DNA of 64,000 bases from Phaeosaccion multiseriatum (GCA_965112735.1 OZ218959.1:1116001-1180000); one strand, 5' to 3'. Positions 8,401-64,000 are shown, counted from the stretch's first letter. Numbers and translations are program-made. Notes: a model not told the origin generated them from the sequence alone.

Positions 8401-11400
8401 TAGCAGCAGGGGCACAGCGGCGCGAGTGGAGCTCCTGGATGGACATTCGTTACACTGGTGGCCGTTGAAGCTGTAGTAGCCGCTCGAGCATACGGCGCAG
8501 TCTGTGCGTGGGTGTGCGTGCGTGCGTGTGTGTGTGAGTTTGTGTGAGAGAGAGAGAGAATGTGTGTGTGGGCGTGAGATAGGGGGAAGATGGCACCGAA
8601 GGTTTCTCTACATGTTCTACTTTTTGAGGGCGAGTTTACACAAGGATGACACTCGCTCACCCACTCTCTCCCTCAGTCAGTCACCCAGGTCAACCACTCC
8701 CTCACTTCCTCACTCAATCACTCACTCTCACTCACCCACCCACTCACTCACTCATTCACTTCAACCATTCACGGATCCAACGCTCCCTTCCTTCCTTCCA
8801 TCCACTCACATGGTCCCTCGTACCCCGCGTTGCAGTACTCGCCCGTCTCTCTCGCAGCCACACCGCCCTTACACGCACCAGTGCCAAGGCACTCGCGCAC
8901 GTCTACAGACTGCAGAGAGACTCTCCAGTGCCCCGGCAGGAGGGGAATGTCCCGTGGGGTGGTGCCCACGCCGAAGCTGCTGCAAGCCATGGTGTCTGCG
9001 TCACACACGTCGCACATCTGCGCGTGGGTGTGGGTGCGTGTGCGGGGACAAGAGGGAGGGCAGGGAGGGGGCTGAGAGAGAGAACAGAGTGCGACAATGA
9101 TGAGCGAAGAGGCAAGGCTGTAGTCGCAAAGAAGCCTCCTCCTCCTTGAGTGAGTGCTGCCCCGCTCTTACGGAGTGACCTCAAGGTACGCACTGTGCGA
9201 TGACTCCTCTCACTGAGCCCATCGTTCGCCGCCTCCCCTCCCTCCTCCTCCTCCTCTTCTTCCTCCTCCTCCTCCTCTTCTTCCTCCTCCTCCTCCTCCT
9301 CCTCCTCCTCTTCCTCCTCCCCTCCTCCTCCTCCTCCTCCTCCTCCTCCTGCTGCTGCTCCTGCTGCCCTTCTCTCGTACCTCGTTACGAGGGGACCAGA
9401 ACTCGCCAATTCGGCAGCATGTTGTGTCGTCGTCTCCCAAGCTGATGTCCTCGCATGAGCAGGAGGAAAGGGCAGAAGCACACACCCCTGCGTCTCCTTC
9501 GCTCTCGTCGCTGCCACACAAACCCAAGATGTCAAAGTTCCCGTAGCAGCAGCCCGCGCTGTTCCCATGAAAGGCTATTGGAGTATCAGCAACCGCCACA
9601 TCAAGACCGCGATGGCGTTGCCCCTCCTCTCGACGAGCAGGGCCATCTGTGATTGTGATCGAGGCAGATGACAGTCCGCCGATGCCCCCCCCGCTCCGCA
9701 GACACTCATTGTTGGCGACGAGGGTTCCATCCCCAATGGAGAGATCGGAATCGCCGCCCAAGTAAAGGGCACCTCCGTAGGCCCCTGCCGAGTTGTTCGT
9801 AACGGTCGTCGCCAACAAGCGGAGGCTACTGACGGGGGCCACGAACAGGGCTCCGCCTGGTGAGAGGAAACGGGGGAGCGGAAACGGGGGGGGAGATTGA
9901 TGGAGCCAGCATTAAGGCCAGGGACATTAACGTGAGCCCGTCTGTGAGTGAGCCCAAAAAGAAATGATACACGTACGTACCATTGTCCGCCGCCGCATTG
10001 AGGTGAAAATCGCAGTTCTCAATTTCAGGAGTAGTCCCTCCGTCAAAGCCCGCGATAAACACGCCTCCTCCTCTGCGGGCGGTGTTGTTGACCACTTCAG
10101 AGTCCCGCAGCGAGCCGAGGCCCTCCAGGTACGCCACGTGCAGGGCTCCTCCGTCTCCGCTGGCCAAATTGTCTCGGAAGACGCAATTGTCGGCCGTCAG
10201 GTTCAAACTCTGAAACGATATTCCCGCTCCAGTGAAGGCGCGGTTCTTCGTAATGCTGATGACGTCCGAAGGGTTGGCGGGAGTGCCACCATCGAGGTAG
10301 AGCTTGCACTCCGCGCCCGAGAAGATGGCACCCCCCTTGGAAGCTTCATTGGAGTCGAAGGTGACGTTGCCCGTGATGTTGGTCGTGATCCCTTCGTGCA
10401 TACAGAGCGCTCCACCCTCCGCGATGGCCACGTTGTTTCTGAACACAGCGTCGTCGGAGATGTTAACGGTGACAGTGTCTGCAAACCGCACCGCGCCGCC
10501 GTATCTAATGGGGTCCCGCATCGGTCGGGGCATGCGAAGAAAGTCGAGAGGCAGGGAGGGAGGGAGGGAGGGAGGGAGGGAGGGAGGGAGGGAGGGAAGG
10601 AGGGAGGGAGGGAGGGAGGGAGGGGATGAGCTGATGACGTGATGCGAGGCCGCCATATTGCTTGACTTGTTGGCGGGTGCGAAACAGCACCCTCTTCTGA
10701 CAATCAAGTGGTGCAAGACGTGACACAGCCCCCACTCTCCGTCGCCACTCACCTCGCTTTGTTGTCCACAAACGAAGCTTCGTCTGAAACGTCGAGGATG
10801 CATTTGTCCTTCATGAACACTGCCCCTCCGTACAGCCCTGCCTCGTTCTCACAGAAGGTGGCTCTGCCGGTAAGTGTCAAATTGCTAAAGCTCTCGATGT
10901 GGACGCCGCCTCCTCCGGCGTTGCGTTCGATGACCTTGTTGCGGCACAACCACGCGTTATCTTGCATGACCATAGCAGTTTCAAAAGCGATAAAGACGGC
11001 TCCGCCTGCCAGGAGGGATACACACTGTTGTTTCGAGGAGATTACGAAGGGGTAGAGAAAGGCAGATCCATGTGGGCGGGTCGAGGGGGAGAGAGACGAA
11101 GGAAGCAAACCGTTACGGAGTGGGGGTGGGGAGGGGGAGGGGCTCGCAGAAAGGCAAGAGCAATAAAGGCCCTTCGCCGCAGGCCGAGTCTTGGCCAACG
11201 AGGAGGGCATCGGCCAGCCCATCCCGTCCGCTCCCGGGGAGAGGGCGCGGCTCACAGTGCAACCCTCCCGTCAATATACACCCACCACACGGACACACAC
11301 GGACATATACACCTGGCTGCTTGCTTACCGACTCTATGAAGCTGTCGTCGCTCATCTCCAGGGATCCCTCCGATACAAAGATCCCTCCGCCCACCAAGCT

Positions 11401-31129: not shown

Positions 31130-32071
31130 TGGCGCCGGCCATAGTCGGGCCCAGGGCAGCCGGCCATACGCAGTATTCAGAAGTATCTAGAGGATGCTGG
31201 GGCCCCCTGCTGCCGACTTGTCGGTCCCGCTTTCTTTTCCTCCGTCATTCCCTCCTCTTTGCTTCTCCTCCCTCTTCTTCTTGGCCTCTTGCCGCCTCTT
31301 GTCCTTGGCCTGCTGCAGCCTCTGCCGCTCGCGCTCGTCCGCGCTGCTCAGGGGAGCTTCCATCCGTGCTGCGCTTCATCATGTCGACTGCTCTCCAGCT
31401 CCTGCAGCGCTGCTCCCCTGAGCTGCCATCCCTGCGTTTGATGAAGGCCCCTGCTCACTTCACCCCCTGCTCTTGCGCTCTGGCTGGTCTCCCGTGCCGG
31501 CCCGCTGTCGTGGTGGCTGTGTCCATGGTGGCGGCCAGGCCAGTGCGGGGGCAAGGGTGGCGGGGAGCTTTTACTACTCAGAGTCGGGCCTCTCCTGGGG
31601 GATGCGGCCGGCCTTCTTTCGTCAGGGGCATCGGCAGCAGAGCTGTTAGCGGCAACGAAGTCAGGCGGGAGGCACCACGACTTGATATGACCCTGACCCT
31701 GTCAACGGTACCCACGTTGCCGGCCCCTGAAAACTCAACTCGTAAGCCACTACGACAGATATCCCTCCTCCTTCTTCCCCTCCTTCCCTTCTTCTCTCGT
31801 TGCCCATAGTACTAGCCGAGGGACTCAGACGGGGCGCTGGCGAGTCGTGGAACTCCTGGTGCTGATGCTGCTCTCCGTGCCCTCCATCATCTAGCTCCTC
31901 CTCCAGCAGTTTGGGGGGGGGGTGGAAGGAGTGGTGGTGGTTCGCCGCGCCCCCGCCGGCCTCTGACCCTGAGCTGCCCCCCCCCCCCAAAACGGCCGAG
32001 CCCCCTCTGCGCCCTGCTTCCATTACGGTGGCTGTCCTCTCGGTGGAGTCTTCTTGATTGTCCTTTGCCAT
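31130..32071 (-). pseudogene. Degenerate coding-like remnant between the divergent Pmp-like genes
   Basis: ORF 31661..32071 is followed by charged helical fragments in shifting frames (ERQRLQQAKDKRRQEAKKKREEK). No intact reading frame or family recognised. Confidence 0.25.
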
Positions 32072-32312
32072 CCCAAGACAGAGTGGGGTGTCGTCGGATT
32101 TTTACCAGTGAAGGCAATGATTTCCAGGGGGGAGGCCGCGCAATTCGGGTTAACAGAAACCGTGATCCTCCTCTTTCCAACACAAAATGCTTGTTGGCTG
32201 TAGCGCCCGCAGAGCAGACGAATAGTTTAGGAGACAGCGAGGACAGGGGCTTTCGAGAACGAGATCTGCGGCTTTCGAGAACGAAATCCGAAGTCGGACG
32301 GAGCAAAAAAGC

Positions 32313-35300
32313 ATGTTTTCTTTTGTCTCCAAAGCGGGCTGCTGCTGGGGATCCTTGCTCATTGCCGTGCTGATTGGCCCCTGTGCGGTGGATGGGCAGG
32401 AGGCACTGACTTGCACGTCTTCGATATCCAACACGACAAGTAGTGCGTCGTTTTCCCTGGACGGAGACCTCAGCTGCGGAAGCCAAAGCACCACCAGCTC
32501 TGGAGATGAGAACTTCTACAGCGACGTATTTGTTGTCCCCGACGGAGTGGAGTGCACCCTTGTGATGTCTGCCGACTCAGGTGGGGAACTGCTGTTGCTT
32601 GTTGTAGTAGTTTTTTGCTTCGCCCCATGAATGGCTCCTGCCTGCGCGCCTGCCTGCCATCGCCCGACAGTGTTGAGCGCGCTTCACTTCTACGTAGGGC
32701 CTGGTGCAAGCCTGACGGCCGAGAGCAACGGCTTCACGCTGTCCATGGTCGATAACGTGGCCTTGCTGGAGGCGGACCCTCTACTAGGGGAGGATCAGGA
32801 CACAGATGACCTTCCCTTTTACATCAGCGATTTTACGGGACATGCCATCAACACGGGAACAGGCAGCACTTTGACCTTCGATGGAGATGTGGAGTTTCGA
32901 GGGAACACCGGTGCGGAGGTGAGAAGCCAAGCCGGCCTTCACTAGAGCGAGATGGATTTGGACAAGAAAACTAATGCTGTCCTGCCTGTTGTATCTTCCC
33001 TGGCTGGCGTCTGTCTCCTCCTCGCTCCGGCACTTGCCTGGGAGGCTCCATGCCCTGCTGCTGGCTAATGCGTGGGCCATTCTAACCATCGTTCGTCGGG
33101 ACTCAGTATGTAAGTGGAGGAGAGAGGAGGGTGTACATGCATGCAGAACCAATTCCCCTGCCAAACTCCTTTATTGATTCCCTTGTCCCCTCCTGCTCAT
33201 CCACGTCACTGACAGGGAGGGGCAGTGCATGCTGGCGTACGGAGCACGGTCACTTTCGGAGGTAACACGGTCTTTTCGGGAAACGAAGCCTCGGAGGTAC
33301 GTCTGTGCCCTTGCTTGCTGTGCCCTCTTATGTCATGGGTGGTGGGCTCGCTTGGCTGAGTCCACCGCTTCCCTTTCACCTTTCTCTTCCTGCCCAGCCA
33401 TACTTTGCTTTTAGGAGAAGCGCTCTTCCTCCTGTCCATCCATGCGCTGAATACCTCTCCGCTTTGACCAATTGAGCCGCTGCAAGCTTGGCTGCCCACG
33501 ACTCGAATGTTCTTTCTTCTCTCCAAGCGGGCGCCGATTCGCCCCCACCTTTTTTTACCCATTCCTTTCCTTCTGCTCCCGCCTTGTGTCTGATCCGTTT
33601 CTTTCCTTTTGTTCCTTTCGTTCTGCTGCCGCCTTTTTCTAACGCATTCCTTTCCTTCTGTTCCCTTCTCCCCTTCTTTCTCCTTCTGTTCGCAACAATA
33701 GTTCGGCTACGTAAGTGGCTAAGCCGCAGGAGCTGATGTGCAGACTGTTCTTTGTCCTTCTGTCTTTGTTGCACTGCCCTTGACCAGCGTGTGGTCCCTC
33801 TAGTAGTGATGCCCTTTGCTGCCTTCTACAGCCCACCTCTCACGCCACTTGTTCGAATCCGCACGGGCGCTTCATCCATTCGCGAACCCAGGCGGGAGCC
33901 GTCCTCGCCAGCCCAAACAGCTCTGTTACTTTTGAAGCCGATGCAACCTTCTCAAACAATGTGGGCCCGGTAAGGCGAGGAGGGGAGGGGAGCTTGTTAC
34001 CTGTGGAATGACATGACGAGCGTGGGAGCGCTTACTGTTTGCAAGCCGCCATTGGCCACCGTGCTGCACTTGACACGACAAGAGGGTGTGCGCGCGCGTG
34101 TGTGTGTATGTGGGTGTGGGGGTGGGTGGGTGTGGGTGTGTGCGTGTGTGTGGGGGGGTGGGTGTGGGTGCGAATGTGTGTTCTGCCGCCGTGCTCGCTT
34201 CTCCCCTGGCGTACCCTGACCCCCCGCCCCCCCCCCCCTGTGTCACCCCCCTCTCTCCTACCTACTCTGCCCCCCCTCACTCGTGTCGTCCGCTTGCCCT
34301 GCGTGCCACACCATCGGGTGCCGTCGAGCAGAACGTAAGAGTGCTGGTGATGGCTAGCGCACACGGTTTACGGTTTCCGCTTCCGCCCCCTCCCCCCCAT
34401 TGCAAAAACTATCTCTCTCTACGCCCAGTGTGCTCGCGAAAAGGAACGGCAAAACTCACGTCTGGACACGTTGCTTGCTCTTTCGTCTTGTTGGGCGTCT
34501 TGTTGGGGGTCTTGTGTTGACAGGGAGCAGGGGCTCTGTGGCTCTACGAGGAGAGCGCCGTGACTTTTGAAGGGACTGCAAGCTTCTCGGATAACAACTC
34601 CGGCAACTATGTACGTCAAGGGGTGGAGCAAAGTAGTGAGCCTTCCGTTCTTCGAATGACTCACGTCTTAACGTGACCCCTCCTGACCCCCCGACACCTT
34701 TCATGTGCCCCTATCGATGGAATGGCCTCACTTCCCGGGCGCGCTTTGAACCTGCTTCTGTCTCCGGCGCTTCATCACCTTACGGTGGCACTTCACGATG
34801 CTTGGGCACGACGCTCAGAACGTAAGTGGAAGCCTCTTGGCCGTGATTGTGCCTGGAAGGCAGAGAGGTTAGCCCCCTTGCAGTCTTGGGGCCGGCCTCC
34901 GCACGCTGAGCAAGGGAAGTAGATGGGAAAATTGTTCGCTAGCGCTGTTCATGCATGCTTGGCTGAGGAGATAGCCCAACTTCTGACATGACTCCTTGCC
35001 TAACCACCTCCTCGATCGTTCTCGCTCGGCCGACCCTCTGGACTTTCATCAGGGAGGGGCGGTGCTCGTCTGGGCTGGTGCCAGTCTGACCTTTGCGGCA
35101 GACGCCACCTTCTCCAACTGCCAGGGTGACTGGGTACGTGCAAAGTGTTGATCTCCGTCGAAAAGAGCTTCCAGAGTCCGTCTCTCTGTCCGTGCAGTGG
35201 AGCTGCTGACGCACCGTCACCACCAGCAAGAGATGCTCGGGGGGAAGAGCTTGGCAACCGACGCTCGCGCGTCTGCGTCACGTCACAGCGGGGGCGGGGA

Positions 35301-38300
35301 GGAAGAGAGGCAGCGGTGTCTTATCACTGTTCCGTCTATCGAGACTGCCGTCAACGTTGGTGTCTTCTTTCCCCCTCTCTCCTCGCTCCTTTCGCTGTCC
35401 TCTTCTGCTCTGTTCTACCCTCTCCAACAGGGAGGCGCCATCTACGCTGAAAGCGCCACAGTCGTATTCGCTGGAGAGAGCTCCTTCTCCGAGAACGTCG
35501 CCCAAACGGTGCGTGGCCGTATTTAGCAGTTATTCAACGGGTGGTCGGAAGGCGATTGGGGAAGACGGGAGGGGTGCTGCAGGCAGTCACGTGGCTGGGT
35601 AGGCCAGGTCGGCTCGCGCGGCTCGTTGTCGGTTTTGCTCGTCTTGCTTGTCAGGCGGCTTGGCTCTTTGGCCCATTGTTGCGCTAATGCCCATGAGTCC
35701 CCCTTCTTGTTTGTCACAACCGCCGGTTCTCCACCCCCGGCCCTTCATGGTGCACGCATATCCTCCTTAGTGGGTAAGTCATGAAAGAGGGCTCCTCTCT
35801 TGAGAGGGAGAGGAAGAGGGGAGAGAGGGTAACTGAAGGAGAGGCAGGGTGGAGGTCGCACGGTCGTCCCTTTACTCGCTCGGCCAGTCGGAAGTGTGTC
35901 TGACGAAAGCTGATGAATCACGTGCGTGTTGCGCCGTGCCATCAACAGGGAGGAGCGGTGTACGGAGAGTCGTCCACCTTCATCTTCGACGGAAGCGCGA
36001 CCTTCACGGCGAACGAGGCCGGGGTGAGTACACGCATATGGTACAAGTACAGGTGCATTTCTGCGCTTGACGGCCTCAGTGAAGCACCACTCCGCCTGGT
36101 GGTATTCCCTTCTTCTCCTTTACCGTCTGCTTTATGCCTTTCTCACTTGCAATCGACGCTCTTTGCTCTCTCTCTGGTCGTCTGTCTTCTTTTGCTCCCA
36201 TGACCGGCCATGTCATCCTCACGTCCCTCCCCGCGCTCCCCTGTCGCTCTGCTTTTTCCTTGTCTGTTGCATCTGACAGGATGTAAGTGTGGCAGTGAGG
36301 CAAGCACCGCTCCCCTTTTCTTGGCGCGGGGGGGGCACCAAGGCGCTGAGCTTCACATGCTTGCCGTGGAGAAGGGGCTCATACACAGCGGGCCATGGCC
36401 ATGCTCTTGTTGGCTTTTAGCAGCCCTGACGTCGTGTCCTTTTCCTTGTTTGCACATTGATAACCGCATGATAACCGCAGGGAGGTGCGCTCCTGCTGGA
36501 CGGGTGCAATGCAGCCTTCAGAGGAGAGACGACTGCTTTCGACGGAAACACGGCTGTGTCGGTGAGTGTGGCACGCGTGGCCGTCGGAGAGGGCAGGACA
36601 GGGATGGCACCAAAAGCGGAGCGGCTATCCTGGCTTTGGTAGCCAAGAGGCTAGCCCCTCGTATGATGCGTGATGGACCAAAGGGAGTGAGCCAAAGCCA
36701 AAGAGATCGAGAGAGGTCCTGCACGCTCTCCTTTGAAACGAGTGACTCCGTTCTCGCCCCCCCTTCGCTGCTGCGGTCTTTACGCATGAGATGCACAACA
36801 GCTCTGGCGCTCCTTGTTACGCCATCATCACCCACGTTGGTGCTCTAGCACCGGACACACCTCGAATCTGATGCCGCTCCGCCGTGTCCCCATGCCTTGC
36901 CTTGCTTGTCGCTCTGTCGTATCTCTTTCTCTTGCGTCGTCTGCCCGGCGCTCCTGCTGTGGGGTGTCGACACCTCGTTCATGTCCTCTTTCTCGTGCCT
37001 ACCAAGGCTGGGAGCGGGGGGGGTCTCCTCGTACGAGCGGACGGCCTGGTCACCTTTACCGACGTTAGCTTCACGGGGAATTCTGCCGGCTATGTAAGCG
37101 AGGTTGCCTTCTTCCCGCCCTACCCCTCCTCAACCCGCGAATCGTCCTCCATGTCTGTGTGCGAATGGCCCGCACGTAATGCGTGAGGAGGTGCTGGAAA
37201 GAGGTGTCTAACTGATCTAACGGTACTGCCCTTTGCTTGCGACCGGAGCAGCGAGGTGCTGCTTCTCTTCTAATGCGCACCACCGCTGTCGGACACTCCT
37301 TTGCGATGCTTTGCGATGGCATACTATTGATCGCGGCGTGGCCCATTTTCGTCTCACTCTTTGCCTCTCCTTTCGCCCCTCGTCTCCCCGGACTGGCTGG
37401 GTGCCCCTGCGCTCGGCCCGCCTTTTTGTGGTCGCCGTGACTTCGGCCAATCATTAGTATGTAAGTAGCAAGGGCAACTGGCTTTGCATGCACATGATCT
37501 GAGAGGAGGGTAGGAGGGAACGACGGAAACCCATTGCCTGGGAGGAGGGAACATGGCGTGTGTGGAGAGGCCCACAGGCCATTGCTTGTAGCAGCCGTTC
37601 GCTGCCGCCCGTTCCCGACCCCACACTCCTCCCCCCCCCCCCCGCGCCTCCCCATCCTCGTCGCTGCCTTACGGGGGCGCCATTCGGCTGCCTTCCTCTC
37701 TATAGGGCGGGGCACTCTCCGTGGATTACAGTACCAACGTTACCTTCCTGGAGCCCGCGACCTTCACTCAGAACAGCGGCGGCTACGGAGGGGCGGTGGG
37801 GGTGTCAGGCGAGGTGGGCGCCCTGTTTGCCAAGGGAGCCCTGTTTACGGACAACTCGGCTGGTGACGACGGCGGCGCCGTTTATGTAGATGACGACGCG
37901 CGTGTTCGATTCGGCTCCGGGGGAGACACCATCTTTCGGGAGAACCAAGCCGAGGAGGATGGTGGGGCCATTGGCGGCAACTTTAATAGCCTTGTCGACT
38001 TTGAGGGAGATGTATCGTTCGAGTCCAACACGGCACGCAACGATGGGGGCGCAGTGAGTGCCGGATATCGCAGTATCTTCACCTTTGACGGAGACGCCAA
38101 CTTCGTCGGCAACGAGGCCACCTTCAACGGCGGAGCGGTGTACGTTTCCGAAGGGCGCGTGTTGTTCCAGGGCGACACCACGGAGTTTTCGGACAATTCC
38201 GCCACCTCGGGCGGCGATGCCATCTTCGTTGAAACGACTGGGAACCCGCTGGTCAGGTTGTGCGGCACGGTGGGAGGCTCGGACTCCCTGCAGGATTCGT

Positions 38301-38740
38301 CGGACTTCGCCAACGTCAACTCCGATACCACGTCCACGTCTTGCGACGGCGAGGACGGTGGAGAGCCTGTTGGAGACGACAATCGCGACGGGGGCGGAGG
38401 AGATAGCGGTGATGAAGATGGCGAGGACGGTGGAGAGCCTGTTGGAGACGACAGTCCCGATGGTGGGGGCGGAGGAGGTAGCGGTGATGAAGATGGCGAG
38501 GACAGTGGAGACCCCGTTGGAGGCGACAGTCCCGATGGTGGAGGAGATGGAGGCGATGTAGATGGCGAGGACGGTGGAGACCCCGTTGGAGGCGACAGTC
38601 GCGACGGGGGCGATGTTGATGTAGGGACCCAAGAAGACGGGGCTGGCATGAGGGCCCCCCGCGGCGCCTTTGCCGTGCTAGTGGCGGTAGCAGCAAGCCT
38701 GCTGCTGCTGTGCAATGGTGGTGCTTCTCTCTCGGTGTGA
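32313..38740 (+). CDS. Secreted, probably GPI-anchored Pmp-like beta-helix protein. Exons 32313..32580, 32671..32918, [33107..33109], 33216..33296, [33702..33710], 33892..33969, [34332..34334], 34524..34610, [34819..34821], 35053..35133, 35431..35508, [35771..35773], 35949..36023, [36280..36282], 36481..36561, 37007..37093, [37458..37460], 37706..38740 (brackets = microexons)
   Basis: Signal peptide (GSLLIAVLIGPCAVDG|QE), about 15 GGA...FxxN rungs, an acidic D/G stalk and a C-terminal hydrophobic tail AFAVLVAVAASLLLLCNGGASLSV. Every listed exon is bounded by AG and GT, and all junctions after exon 2 are phase 0. Confidence 0.85.
38346..38625 (+). repeat. Coding repeat, 4 x DGEDGG(E/D)PVG(D/G)D(S/N)xDGG acidic stalk
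   Basis: Four imperfect units of about 70 bp within ORF 37721..38740. Confidence 0.85.
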
Positions 38741-38880
38741 GGCATGACGTAGTAGGTGCTTTTGAGGAGGGAGGTGTTTCGATTTGAATAGGCCAAGTAG
38801 TAGTAGCAGCAGCAGCAGCAGTAGCAGGTCAGGGCGGGTTGCGGGTTGCTGCACGCTTAGAACTCTGGACTAGGGGTAAC

Positions 38881-38999
38881 CGACCCCTGACGCACTATCG
38901 CCTACATTCTCGATAGCGCGCTATCCGATAGCGGATAGCGGATCGGCTGGCGCCGGCGATAGCGGATAGCGCACGCCGGCTGGCGCCGGCTATACAGGG
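38881..38999. mobile_element. Small hairpin/MITE-like element, copy 2 (right end rearranged)
   Basis: Shares CCCCTGAC...ACATTCTCGATAGCGCGCTATC and TGGCGCCGGCGATAGCGGATAG with 5181..5296. Its first 19 bp are the exact reverse complement of 5278..5296. Confidence 0.55.
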
Positions 39000-39269
39000 C
39001 CCGTGAAGTGCCATCTATGGTTGGCACATAAACTGAAAACTGAAAACTGGAAAACCCACTTCCCCCTCCGAGAGGGAAGGGGAGAATAAAAGAGAGCGAG
39101 CGAGCGAGAAAAAGAGAGAGAGAGAGAGACCGAGAGAGAAAGAGAGCGAGAGAGAGAGAAAGAGAGAGACGACACTAGGGAACCACTTGGGTAAACACCT
39201 GGAGGAGGGAGGAGACTGCGTCTTGAGAGTAATGAGCTGAGGGGGGGGGAGGTGACGCGTGGAACAAAC

Positions 39270-43859: not shown

Positions 43860-43961
43860 ACTCCTACACCACAAAAGGTATTGTGCTTCCCAAGGCTTGT
43901 AGCACCCTCAGTAATTCACGGCCTACCTAAGAACACTACCAAAGAACACACAACAGCGAAC

Positions 43962-45239
43962 ATGGCCGCGATGACGGAGGCGACCCCCACCAGCAAGCCT
44001 AAGGTCGCCCTGGTGACCGGCATCACGGGCCAGGACGGCTCCTACCTCGCAGAGTTACTGCTGGAGAAGGGCTACGTGGTGCACGGCATCATTCGCAGGT
44101 CGTCTTCTTTCAACACGTCGCGCATCGACCACCTGTACCAGGATCGCCACATTAAGGACGCTAAGCTCTTCCTGCATTACGGCGACTTGACCGACTCCAC
44201 CAACCTCGTACACATCATCTACGAGACGCAGCCGGACGAGATCTACAACCTGGGCGCAATGTCCCATGTGAAGGTAAGCGTGGTGCATGAAGAGTTTCGG
44301 AGGGGGGGGTGGAGAGAGAACGTGGAAGGAAGAGGTGAGGGGAGGAAAACACACTGCATTGCTGTACATGCATGCTGTGTAACTCATGTCGAATTGTTTG
44401 TTCTTTCCTGTTGTTGCTCAACCACACTTGCTTTGCTTTTGCTCATGTCAAAGGTGTCCTTTGAGATGTCCGAGTACACCGCTGAGGCTGATGGCGTGGG
44501 CTGCCTGCGCCTGCTCAACGCCATACGCTCCGCGGGCCTGGAGAAGAAGTGCCGCTTCTACCAAGCCTCCACCTCGGAGCTGTACGGAAAGGTGCAGGAG
44601 ATCCCCCAGAAGGAGACCACGCCCTTCTACCCTCGCTCCCCCTACGGAGTGGCCAAGCAGTACGCCTTTTGGATGCTCATCAACTACCGAGAGGCCTACG
44701 GCATGCACCTCACCAACGGCATTCTCTTCAACCACGAGAGCCCCCGCCGCGGCCCAACCTTCGTCACGAGGAAAATCACTCGGGCGGTGGCTCGCATCCA
44801 CCGCGGCCAGCAGGACTGCCTCTTCCTGGGCAACCTCGACGCCAAGCGAGACTGGGGACACGCTCGCGACTATGTCAAGGGCATGTGGCTCATGGTGCAG
44901 AGGGACACGCCGGAGGACTACGTGCTCGCCACGGGAGAGTGCCACGAGGTGCGCGAGTTCGTAGACAAGGCCTTCGCCTACGTGGGCACTACCATCGTGT
45001 GGGAGGGCAAGGGCGTGGACGAGAAGGGCTACAACGCCACCGATGTCGACAAGAAGAATCCTCTCGTGCAGGTGGATGCAGAGTACTTTAGGCCTACGGA
45101 GGTGGAGCTGCTTGTGGGCGACCCTGCCAAGGCCAAGCGCGAGTTGGGGTGGGAGCCCGAGGTGACTTTCCAAGAGCTCGTCAACGATATGATGAAGTCG
45201 GACTTGGAGCTTGTGGACAAGGGCGACAGGCACTCGTAA
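43962..45239 (+). CDS. GMD: GDP-mannose 4,6-dehydratase; join(43962..44273, 44454..45239)
   Basis: [72 protein letters not shown] and [15 protein letters not shown] are all present. One GT-AG intron at 44274..44453. Confidence 0.97.
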
Positions 45240-60875: not shown

Positions 60876-63028
60876 AACTGACACCAACCTCCTTGTTGCC
60901 CTTCTGCGGGTCATCCTTCTCTATGCCCATAGTCCTCCTCATGTACTCTTCCTCGTAGATCTGCGCCAGGCCCTCCTTGCTCTTCTCCTCCGACAACGCA
61001 GGGCCGTCACCTTTGTCTCGCTTGTGCTGAGAAGAGAGCTGCGGGGAGAGAGGAGAGGGGGAAGAGGACAAAATACCCACAAGTGATGCGTGATTTCCGT
61101 GGTGCGTGATGCCGTGAGCAGCAGAAAGAGTAAACGAGGGAAGGGACCCGAAGGAGCAGAGAGAGAGAGAAAGAAACATTAGTCACTCCAAACCCCTCCC
61201 ACGACCGAATGAGCAGAGTGTGTGTGCGTGCAGAACTACAGTGATAGCAGTGCCCCATCTGGACCCACCCACTCACACACTCCCCTCGCAAACTCGCTCA
61301 CTCCCTCACCCACCCACTCACTCCCTCGCTAACTCACCAAAATGTGGCGTGGAACGACGTCGTCCCACTTTTCATCGCGACAGCGCTGCCGAATCACGTC
61401 CTCCAGCGACGCCGTCTTCTCCACCGTGATGACCGGCGCCACCCTCGTGGCCCGCTCCACATCGACCGCCGCCTCGAGGAGCGAGTTCTCGGGCCGATCG
61501 GCGCTCTTAATCTCTCCACGCATGTCCCATGGCTTCTCTGCAAGCAGCTCCTGCTCCAGCTCTGTCATTTGACGCCTTAGCCGCTTTTTCGTTGCAGCTA
61601 CCCTCGTTTCGGGCCCCTTCTCTTGCTCCTCCTCCTCCTCCTCCTCCTCCTCCTCCTCCTCCTCCTCCTCCTCCTCCTCCTCTTCCTCTTCCTCTTCCTC
61701 CTCCTCTTCTTCCTCCCCGTCCTCTCCCTCCTCCTCCTCCTCCTCCTCGTCATCATCATCATCATCTTCCTCCTCCTCGTCGTCGGCGAAGAAGTCCGAA
61801 AACCTGGCCTCGCTGGGCCTCACTCCGTACTCCCCTCTCTCTTCCTCGTCACTGCCGTTCTCATCAGCATCATCTCCGTAGAGAATGTCAAGCTCGGTGT
61901 CGGACAGCTCCGCATCGCTGTCCATGTTTCCCTCATCTGCCATTTGCTCCATCTCTTGCTCATCGAAAAAGTCTCGATGCTTCCTGGTCCCGCTTGCGCC
62001 TCCCCCCTCTCTTCTTCTCTTACTGCCGCTGCTCTTTCCTCCACTGCTTCGCCCCCGCAGGCTCTCGTCCTCATCTAACTCACCATCAATGTCGTCTCCC
62101 TCATCGTCGTCTTCTTCTCCCGCCCCGTGGGCATCCAGCATTCTATTCAGTAGAGCCTCCTCTTCCGCCTCTATCTCCTCCTCAGTCTTCTTCCTCTCCT
62201 TGCCCTTGCCCTTGCCCTTGCTCCCTTTTCTACGACCCTTCCGTGCTGCACCTTTCCGCTCGTCAGCGTCCGCTTCTTCTTCTTCTTCTTCTTCTTCTTC
62301 TTCTTCTTCTTCCTCCTCCTCCTTCTCCTCCTCCTCGTCTTCCTCCTCCTCCTCGTCTTCCTCCGCCTCCTCCTCCTTCTCCTCCTCCTCCTCCTCCTCC
62401 TCCTCGAACACCTCTGCTACTAATGACAGATCTTCACTCTGGGCTAAGGTTCTGCAGTTCCGTTTGAGGTACTTAAGCAGAGGCTCGTGCCTCAGCTGCA
62501 TTTGCTGCCATATTGACTCTGTGTCCTGTCCATCTACGTGTAGCTCGTCCAGCTCGGCGCCTGAGCTTTTCCCTCGCCTCGCCCTCTTGCCTTTGTTGTC
62601 CGCAGCGTCCTCTTTCGCAGTGCCATCAACAGACTGAATAGCAGGAGCAGGAGAGCATAACATGGGTTAAGAGGAGGAGGGAAGGTTGGATCGAGAAGGA
62701 AGACGTCGCAAGGCCAGGATGGGGTGGCAGCCAGGCTTGGAATAGTCGCCGCGCTCTCGTGCCTCTCTCCCCATGCCTTGGGCCCCCCGATCGCTGGATT
62801 CGGCCGGGTCCCTTCTCTCCCCACTCATGTTCCAGTGGTGAAGCAAGAGACGAGGAGCTCGCACAGCACCCCCCTAGCCGAGGCGCTCGCCCTCCTCACC
62901 TTGGCGTAGTCGAAGAGAGACTTGAGCACCGATGCGAGCTTGCCTGCCAGCTCCTCCGAGGGCTGACAGAAGTCTTCAGGCCTGCTCGCAATGCCCTCTA
63001 TAGTGGCGAGGCTCTCCTGCAGAGCCAT
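59372..63028 (-). CDS. MPP10: U3 snoRNP protein Mpp10 (multi-exon)
   Basis: L.VDG.D.E.IWQQ, an acidic tracts region, ELEQELLAEKPWDMRGEI...RPENSLLE...PVITVE.T.SLED.IRQR...WDDV, LSEEKSKEGLAQIYEEEY, KLDSLSNFHFTPKP, PAIAMEE..P, LAPEEV and SAKFFSALQ. Confidence 0.93.
59622..60042. repeat. Compound (TAG)n/(GAG)n intronic microsatellite
   Basis: Visible trinucleotide arrays within the last MPP10 intron. Confidence 0.9.
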
Positions 63029-63128
63029 GGCTTCGATGGCTAAAACACGAAGCTTGGAGGGCCAAAGGAGATTGGGGGGCTGGAGGCATACGGGCCAGTT
63101 TTCACTGCTTCATTCTGTCCCATTTCCC

Positions 63129-64000
63129 ATGGCCTTCCTCCTCGCCTCCCGGCAGCAGCAGCACAGGCTCTGTTCCTTCGTATGGACTAGCTCTAGCAGA
63201 GGAGTCTCCTCCTCGCCGCTTGCAGCCAACAGGTACCAGGGCCTCCCGCAGAGTTGGAGGAGGTGCAGCATGAGAAGGCGAACGCTCCAAAGAAGCACCG
63301 CGTCGCCGACGTGGGCCGTGAGAAGCAGCAACAGTAGCAGGAGCAGCGGAAGCAGGAGCAGTAGCAGCAGCAGCGGCAGCAGCGGCAGCAGCGTGCTCGA
63401 GTCGGAGGTGAAGAAGTTCCGCCACCTGCAACACGAGTGGTGGAACACCTCTTCTCGATTGGGCACGGGGCCTCTGCACACAATGAACGCTGCTCGGGTG
63501 TCCTTTGTGCGGGACGAGTGTCTCACACACATTGCCGAGGTGCGCGCTGACGAGGATGGCTTTGCCTTGCCCTTGCAGGGGTTGCGTATTGTGGACGTGG
63601 GGTGTGGAGGGGGCGTTCTCAGCGAATCGCTGTCTCGTCTGGGTGCGTCGGTAGTGGGTGTGGATCCAAGCATAGAGAACATTGCGGTGGCCGCTGCGCA
63701 CAGCCAGACGGACCCTCTCACGAGGGGCATTCACTACAAGGGAGTTACTGTGGAGGAGCTGGCGGAGAGGGGCGAGCAATTCGACGTGGTGGCAGCGCTG
63801 GAGGTCATTGAGCACGTTGACCAGGTGAGTGAGCTTGTACGTATGGATTGCGTGCCCCTTTCCCCCCTTTTGTTGTTTCTTACTCACTTTTGCGTTCACT
63901 GTATTTTTATTTAACATACACGTGTAGGCCAAGGCGTTTGTGGAGTCTCTTACGCGGCTGGTTCGGGTCGGGGGCCTCGTGTTTGTGTCAACCATGAACA
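63129..64000 (+). CDS. COQ3: Ubiquinone biosynthesis O-methyltransferase, mitochondrial, 3'-partial; join(63129..63824, 63928..>64000)
   Basis: EVKKF...EWW...GPLHTMNAARVSFVR, SAM motif IVDVGCGGGVLSESLSRLGA.V.GVD, FDVVAALEVIEHV and GGLVFVSTMN. The N-terminus is R/S-rich and presequence-like. Confidence 0.93.

Follow-up and report, generated by a model that had tools for sequence, protein, structure and literature searches.

Phase-0 exons of one predicted β-helix coil each, with candidate micro-exons between them, in a Pmp-repeat gene of the alga Phaeosaccion multiseriatum

A gene on the plus strand of a 64,000-nucleotide (nt) stretch of the genome of the ochrophyte stramenopile alga Phaeosaccion multiseriatum (hereafter the window) spans positions 32313 to 38740 and contains eight small exons, E1 to E8, each of which encodes one Pmp repeat, predicted to form one three-strand coil, or rung, of a right-handed β-helix. 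These cassette exons are preceded by two predicted exons, a and b, and followed by a terminal exon (Table 1). The one-rung-per-exon pattern is real and well beyond chance, and we favor the view that it is the footprint of tandem duplication of an exon-plus-intron cassette, a relic of how the array was constructed. Most of the introns also carry candidate micro-exons of 3 to 9 nt; if read correctly, this periodic micro-exon is a more surprising feature than the cassettes themselves. The exon model was read from the genomic sequence alone, by frame translation, and searches were made exon by exon.

RESULTS AND DISCUSSION

Cassette exons and the repeat unit

The lengths of E1 to E8 (75 to 87 nt) are all multiples of 3, an outcome with a chance probability of (1/3)^8, or about 1.5e-4. 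In all eight, AG precedes and GT(A/G)(A/C)G follows the exon and the translation contains no stops; stops flank every cassette exon, and the surrounding open frames are short. Each exon comprises one unit, the consensus of the 14 units being GGAVxxxxxxxVTFxGDAxFxxNxAxx. The acceptor lies directly before the G/A-G-A motif in six of the eight exons, with E3 starting one codon earlier and E8 three. An earlier note on this DNA had proposed eight phase 0-0 exons of this size with one Pmp repeat apiece; borders, lengths, and translations confirm this, and the rung-sized phase-0 exons are real modules. Its statement that each exon encodes exactly one repeat holds for E1 to E8, which make up the 5' two-thirds of the helix, but not for the terminal exon with its six intron-free units. 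Equating an exon with a whole rung likewise suits the eight exons but needs amendment, since seven of the nine introns hold a likely micro-exon and most rungs would thus be an exon plus a micro-exon. The residues following GGA do differ in every exon, yet this is uninformative because the units are only 24 to 57% identical overall. That any exon could be skipped in frame is correct as arithmetic, the lengths being multiples of 3, but it is not evidence for skipping.

The terminal exon matches the Pfam family PF02415 (Chlam_PMP) with 35.5 bits against a cutoff of 20.6 (E = 6.9e-9). An AlphaFold2 model of its six contiguous units, aligned for input with 35 homolog segments, reached a predicted local distance difference test score (pLDDT) of 96.5 and a predicted template modeling score (pTM) of 0.92, with three β-strands per 27 to 30 residues. 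A Foldseek search of the model against the PDB gave no significant match, and VIA-align returned right-handed β-helices at Z scores of 11 to 15 (root mean square deviation of 2 to 3 Å over 150 to 163 residues), among them phage tailspikes, the Vag8 and pertactin passengers, and alginate and pectate lyases. The strand periodicity and these matches argue that, in the modeled structure, each Pmp repeat forms a single three-strand turn of a right-handed β-helix.

The product is likely a secreted, C-terminally anchored protein, presumably at the cell surface, with a right-handed β-helix ectodomain of about 16 Pmp-type coils. No autotransporter β-barrel was found at the C terminus, where Pfam gives PF02415 only; an acidic repeat stalk and one hydrophobic segment are present instead. 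The stalk repeats, just upstream of the anchor and composed of Gly, Asp, Glu, and Pro, share 83 to 93% mutual identity and are the sole recently duplicated module in the gene. With chlamydial Pmp proteins and other bacterial Pmp-repeat β-helix proteins (PF02415), the product shares the alternating GGA[ILV] and FxxN motifs, the predicted right-handed three-strand β-helix, and predicted surface exposure. In contrast to these, the algal gene is eukaryotic and intron-rich; its protein combines a predicted signal peptide with an acidic stalk and ends in a lone hydrophobic anchor where the autotransporters have a β-barrel; and the sequences closest to it are only 41 to 43% identical.

Paralogs with the same architecture

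A Pfam family scan of the genome yielded one match and was too insensitive; a profile of the 14 units was searched against the alga's own 67-Mb assembly instead and turned up further loci where a short open frame holds a single unit. The three loci inspected (on C4, C9, and C13; there are at least three paralogs) have phase-0 exons of the form cag/GGA...N-x-A-x/gtgagt, like the window gene (slashes mark exon borders), and candidate micro-exons of 3, 6, or 9 nt between them. The C4 gene has nine cassettes, flanked by a signal-peptide/N-cap exon on one side and a Pro/Thr stalk with anchor on the other. Exon a of the window gene is homologous to this N-cap exon; its donor CAG/GTGGGG and an acceptor at 32670 restore the frame across a 90-nt intron. 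C9 and C13 carry one to four units per exon and then a long 3' exon.

The C4 cassettes can be aligned through their introns at 70 to 91% identity. Because the introns are homologous between cassettes, whole cassettes must have been duplicated. Conservation is highest in the 3' half of the exon (0.59 to 0.67) and in the 150 nt that lead up to the micro-exon (0.53 to 0.61), with 0.43 in the first 30 nt of the exon. A semi-global table of exon versus intron identity for C4 was discarded, shuffled baselines reaching 0.68 to 0.75. A 299-nt tandem duplication of 94.6% identity (C4:2924365-2924970) follows the C4 array downstream, at a position either inside the stalk open frame or immediately past it.

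C13 shows both cassette duplication with its intron and precise intron loss. A 438-nt copy pair is 89% identical by BLAST and 96 to 97% identical over aligned columns (exon, 96%; intron, 97%). One copy has an intron acceptor upstream, whereas the second is joined in frame to the repeat before it; the homology nevertheless begins at the exon border, which is the signature of precise intron loss. These are the two processes needed to produce the eight cassettes and the six-unit terminal exon of the window gene.

Two intronic sequences are common to the C4 and C13 cassettes (in C13 at about 129146 and 132786), GCGTGCGGTCTGCCCAG directly upstream of the micro-exon acceptor and GTAAGTGCC downstream. 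With three mismatches allowed, the intronic element has six matches in the genome, four in C4, one in C13, and one in C3 (715579, uninspected). Its GGGC...GCCC ends may be able to pair. Elsewhere in the window, the minus strand between 5000 and 30200 holds three tandem Pmp-repeat paralogs spaced by about 10 kb, head-to-head with the window gene (units at 9708, 19739, 27693, and others), with several repeats per exon. Their open reading frames of 244 to 325 amino acids match PF02415 and PF13229, and no close relationship with the window gene was detected for them.

Candidate micro-exons

Seven of the nine introns contain an in-frame AG/3-9 nt/GTAAGT, a candidate micro-exon that would encode the residue or residues preceding the next GGA. 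On the plus strand of the 64 kb, AG-NNN-GTAAG occurs at six sites, all of them in six different introns of this gene (four sites on the minus strand), and the seventh intron has AG/9 nt/GTAAGT. The predicted micro-exon motif is a property of the gene family and not of the genome; CAGNNNGTAAGTGG is barely enriched genome-wide (46 occurrences against 32 for a control). The candidates show what is expected of ultra-short coding micro-exons, namely canonical AG/GT flanks, an intact frame, no stop, and a position conserved in homologs. Sub-introns of 106 to 403 nt separate them from the cassette exons.

The candidate codons read, in order, Y, FGY, N, N, W, D, and Y. In a survey of 3,789 repeat junctions from 259 intron-free relatives, GGA was most often preceded by N, S, D, or Y, and the N-to-GGA spacing was 5 in 58% of junctions, 4 in 27%, and 3 in five cases, with none shorter. 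E4 already ends in Trp, and the 297-nt intron that follows it lacks a micro-exon signal; this, together with the spacing of 3 that E6 and E7 would have without the Asp codon, fits a coding role. In the paralogs, exon tail and micro-exon add up to five residues in most cases (in C4, e.g., NAA+QVN, NSAG+ED, NSAE+RD). The intron after E7 holds no convincing micro-exon; AG/GGA/GTGAGC at about 36682 in intron 7 was considered as an extra one and dropped as weak, its upstream flank being purine-rich. Intron 2 also contains a GT/G-rich microsatellite (34080-34183) followed by a long poly-C tract (34214-34253), which a C-rich tract in the last intron (37620-37671) resembles.

Few-nucleotide in-frame exons with canonical splice sites, conserved between homologs and easily overlooked in annotation, are known from plants, where ultra-short micro-exons measure 15 nt or less (PMC8831610). 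Unlike these, the algal candidates would be periodic, with one for each structural repeat of a gene, and would occur in four paralogs; their host would be a stramenopile. A literature search found no report of micro-exons in stramenopiles and nothing relevant on Pmp repeats in stramenopile algae.

Age of the array

The array in the window gene is probably ancient and stable, with no sign of present-day shuffling. Its units share 45 to 64% nt identity and 24 to 57% protein identity, cassette-borne and terminal-exon units alike. Synonymous differences between them are saturated (proportion of synonymous differences, pS, 0.72), as is the ratio of nonsynonymous to synonymous substitution (dN/dS). 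Identity between units within the gene (0.39) is about equal to that between genes (0.35 to 0.40). Intron-to-intron BLAST and a repeat search of the gene returned chance-level matches and the micro-exon signal only. When the 14-unit profile was run over 32001-39000, nothing on the reverse strand reached 5 bits and the plus strand gave only the annotated exons, and thus no pseudo-repeats.

Searches for close relatives were consistent with this picture. The six-unit block, used to look for paralogs, had no match above 43% identity, a word-index protein search gave 42% at best, and an exhaustive search of 1.84 billion cluster representatives returned 5,350 relatives at E values up to 0.001, the best at 41% among the 150 listed. 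A metagenome locus scan found no relative. With best identities of 42% and 41%, no ortholog was found for a comparison of exon order. In the relatives retrieved from other organisms, Laminaria digitata P0010 among them, the repeats run on without introns, and none offered an example of the cassette state outside this genome.

Alternative explanations

In the reading that we prefer, the helix would have grown by tandem duplication of an exon-plus-intron unit, a process that would by itself give all introns one phase and one shared position within the repeat, and the six-coil terminal exon would have formed through precise, 3'-biased intron loss. Several points weigh against this. Cassette and terminal units are equally diverged, and intron loss in the terminal exon is thus inseparable from its never having had introns. 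Since the fetched relatives are all intron-free in their repeats, the cassette state must be derived within the alga's lineage, with intron gain at least once. The absence of recent change concerns one gene in one assembly and is compatible with alternative splicing; splice junctions and micro-exons are predicted from genomic sequence; and the FGY micro-exon would give a spacing of 7, and the Asn after E3 a spacing of 6, both of them unusual. Intron-free relatives, mutually dissimilar introns in the window gene, and a terminal block of six units free of introns would suit parallel intron gain, that is, independent insertions into each repeat at a recurring proto-splice sequence before GGAGG, with no duplication of exon and intron together. 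Such a history would require paired gains flanking a single codon at seven junctions, and again in three paralogs, and it conflicts with the homology of C4 introns between cassettes, which points to whole-cassette duplication. An introner-like repeat was looked for and not seen: the motif that introns share is confined to C4, C13, and the single C3 match. We regard parallel gain as highly improbable. It is also conceivable that the mRNA joins the eight exons directly and that the AG-NNN-GTAAGT sites inside the introns serve as recursive splice sites or decoys, or persist as relics. The frame is kept with or without the micro-exons, direct joining would mostly give a spacing of 4, common enough among relatives, and the atypical spacings of 6 and 7, like the reliance on genomic sequence, would count in its favor. 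Direct joining would also produce spacings of 2 to 3 in C4 and of 3 between E6 and E7, at or below the shortest found in the junction survey. Codon identities agree with the family's junction residues, no stop codon occurs in seven window and nine C4 candidates, exon-tail and micro-exon lengths compensate each other in C4, and the signals are kept in four paralogs that are otherwise 35 to 45% identical. A noncoding role is therefore unlikely, and the micro-exons are probably spliced into the mRNA.

The earlier note had read the cassettes as a working diversification system, in which skipping, duplication, or swapping of exons generates surface-protein variants by analogy with Ectocarpus. The precedent exists as cited (PMC3341825, PMC11378527). 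In the LRR-ROCO genes of Ectocarpus, each LRR is a phase-0 exon of identical 72-nt length, inactivated repeats lie in introns and on the reverse strand, tandem gene duplicates and pseudogenes occur, exon phylogenies are intermixed, and positive selection is seen (Zambounis et al. 2012, PMC3341825). The algal gene shares with LRR-ROCO and NB-ARC-TPR genes the stramenopile lineage, one structural repeat per small phase-0 exon (in all eight cassettes, with six further units in one exon), exon-plus-intron duplication, and a repeat number that varies among paralogs. It differs in that its repeat is a β-helix coil (Pmp) and not an LRR or TPR, its exons are unequal in length, ROC-COR and NB-ARC signaling domains are absent, and an extra candidate micro-exon lies between most cassettes. 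Intronic or reverse-strand pseudo-exons, a hallmark of the Ectocarpus case, are absent from 32001-39000. Its array is ancient, with no detectable shuffling, and recent exon duplicates occur only in C4 and C13.

In favor of a functioning diversification system, every cassette and micro-exon has a length divisible by 3, which keeps any subset in frame, and the β-helix fold, judging from the model, may tolerate having a coil added or removed. Cassette number varies among the paralogs, and C4 and C13 contain young duplicates; the lower conservation of the first 30 nt of the C4 exon relative to its 3' half and to the intron before the micro-exon points the same way. The window gene itself, however, is a single-copy gene whose relatives reach at most 43% identity, lacks recent duplicates and intron homology, and is saturated at synonymous sites. 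In the young C13 pair, exon and intron have diverged to nearly the same extent, a neutral-like pattern, and the C4 dN/dS value of 1.36 exceeds 1 only for columns chosen post hoc as variable, so that the argument is circular. The modular reading thus stands as history, the array having been built by duplication of rung cassettes, but the analogous diversification system does not stand for this gene: its units are diverged and synonymously saturated, its introns unrelated, its exon lengths unequal, and pseudo-repeats absent. Present evidence for adaptive diversification in the window gene is negative, and we consider the idea quite unlikely; the younger C4 and C13 arrays may be such a system.

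Wider significance

Arrays with one repeat per exon are a classic source of new binding proteins; among stramenopiles, the descriptions known so far are confined to candidate immune receptors of the LRR and TPR kinds. In the present gene this genomic logic appears on a β-helix, with one exon for one solenoid turn. Young and old arrays coexist in one genome, and their life cycle is readable as duplication with introns, divergence, and precise intron loss. With considerable doubt, we speculate that the family builds β-helix surface proteins from rung cassettes, each an exon plus a 3- to 9-nt micro-exon, with micro-exon splicing guided by GCGTGCGGTCTGCCCAG and with helix length and surface tuned as cassettes are duplicated, introns precisely lost, and perhaps cassettes or micro-exons skipped. 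If so, this would be the first described periodic micro-exon architecture and the first exon-per-coil β-helix. Should the micro-exons be genuine, they would offer an unusually clean natural test bed for how the spliceosome recognizes exons far below the normal size limit, and a warning that gene models of such algae miss residues.

Coordinates and neighboring genes

Table 1. Positions of the features discussed (window coordinates unless a contig is named; slashes mark exon borders)
Feature	Position	Strand	Description	Basis
Exon a	32313..32580	+	ATG, signal-peptide-like hydrophobic N terminus, N-cap; phase 1 end	Frame translations
Exon b	32671..32918	+	N-cap and first partial Pmp unit, ending ..FRGNTGAE/gtgaga, phase 0	Profile match, 17.6 bits
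Candidate micro-exon 1	33107..33109	+	TAT (Tyr); N-to-GGA spacing becomes 5	cag/TAT/gtaagtgg
E1	33216..33296	+	One Pmp unit, 81 nt, phase 0-0	Borders, translation
Candidate micro-exon 2	33702..33710	+	9 nt (Phe-Gly-Tyr)	tag/TTCGGCTAC/gtaagtgg behind pyrimidine-rich tract
E2	33892..33969	+	One Pmp unit, 78 nt, phase 0-0	Borders, translation
Candidate micro-exon 3	34332..34334	+	AAC (Asn)	AG-NNN-GTAAG motif
E3	34524..34610	+	One Pmp unit, 87 nt, phase 0-0	Borders, translation
Candidate micro-exon 4	34819..34821	+	AAC (Asn)	AG-NNN-GTAAG motif
E4	35053..35133	+	One Pmp unit, 81 nt, phase 0-0; last residue Trp	Borders, translation
E5	35431..35508	+	One Pmp unit, 78 nt, phase 0-0	Borders, translation
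Candidate micro-exon 5	35771..35773	+	TGG (Trp)	AG-NNN-GTAAG motif
E6	35949..36023	+	One Pmp unit, 75 nt, phase 0-0	Borders, translation
Candidate micro-exon 6	36280..36282	+	GAT (Asp); N-to-GGA spacing 3 without it	AG-NNN-GTAAG motif
E7	36481..36561	+	One Pmp unit, 81 nt, phase 0-0	Borders, translation
E8	37007..37093	+	One Pmp unit, 87 nt, phase 0-0	Borders, translation
Candidate micro-exon 7	37458..37460	+	TAT (Tyr)	AG-NNN-GTAAG motif
Terminal exon	37706..38740	+	Ends with stop codon	Translation, Pfam, repeat search, AlphaFold2 model
Six contiguous Pmp units	37706-38212	+	In terminal exon; followed by C-cap	Translation, Pfam
Four acidic tandem repeats	38318-38608	+	72-75 nt each, in terminal exon	Repeat search
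C-terminal hydrophobic anchor	about 38666-38713	+	In terminal exon	Translation
Paralog C4	C4:2925647-2932577	-		14-unit profile
Paralog C9	C9:1821186-1827988			14-unit profile
Paralog C13	C13:127388-134835			14-unit profile
Young cassette pair in C13	L026:3646-4079 and L026:5977-6386		Homology starts exactly at the first base of the exon	

Among the neighbors of the gene, the window contains an Mpp10 homolog at 61329-62663 on the minus strand, a class I methyltransferase at 62991-63914 on the plus strand, and a GDP-mannose 4,6-dehydratase (PF16363, E = 6e-151) at 43881-45239 on the plus strand. The best named relatives of the dehydratase, at 57 to 63% identity, come from the ochrophyte algae Sphacelaria, Florenciella, Tribonema, and Chrysoparadoxa.

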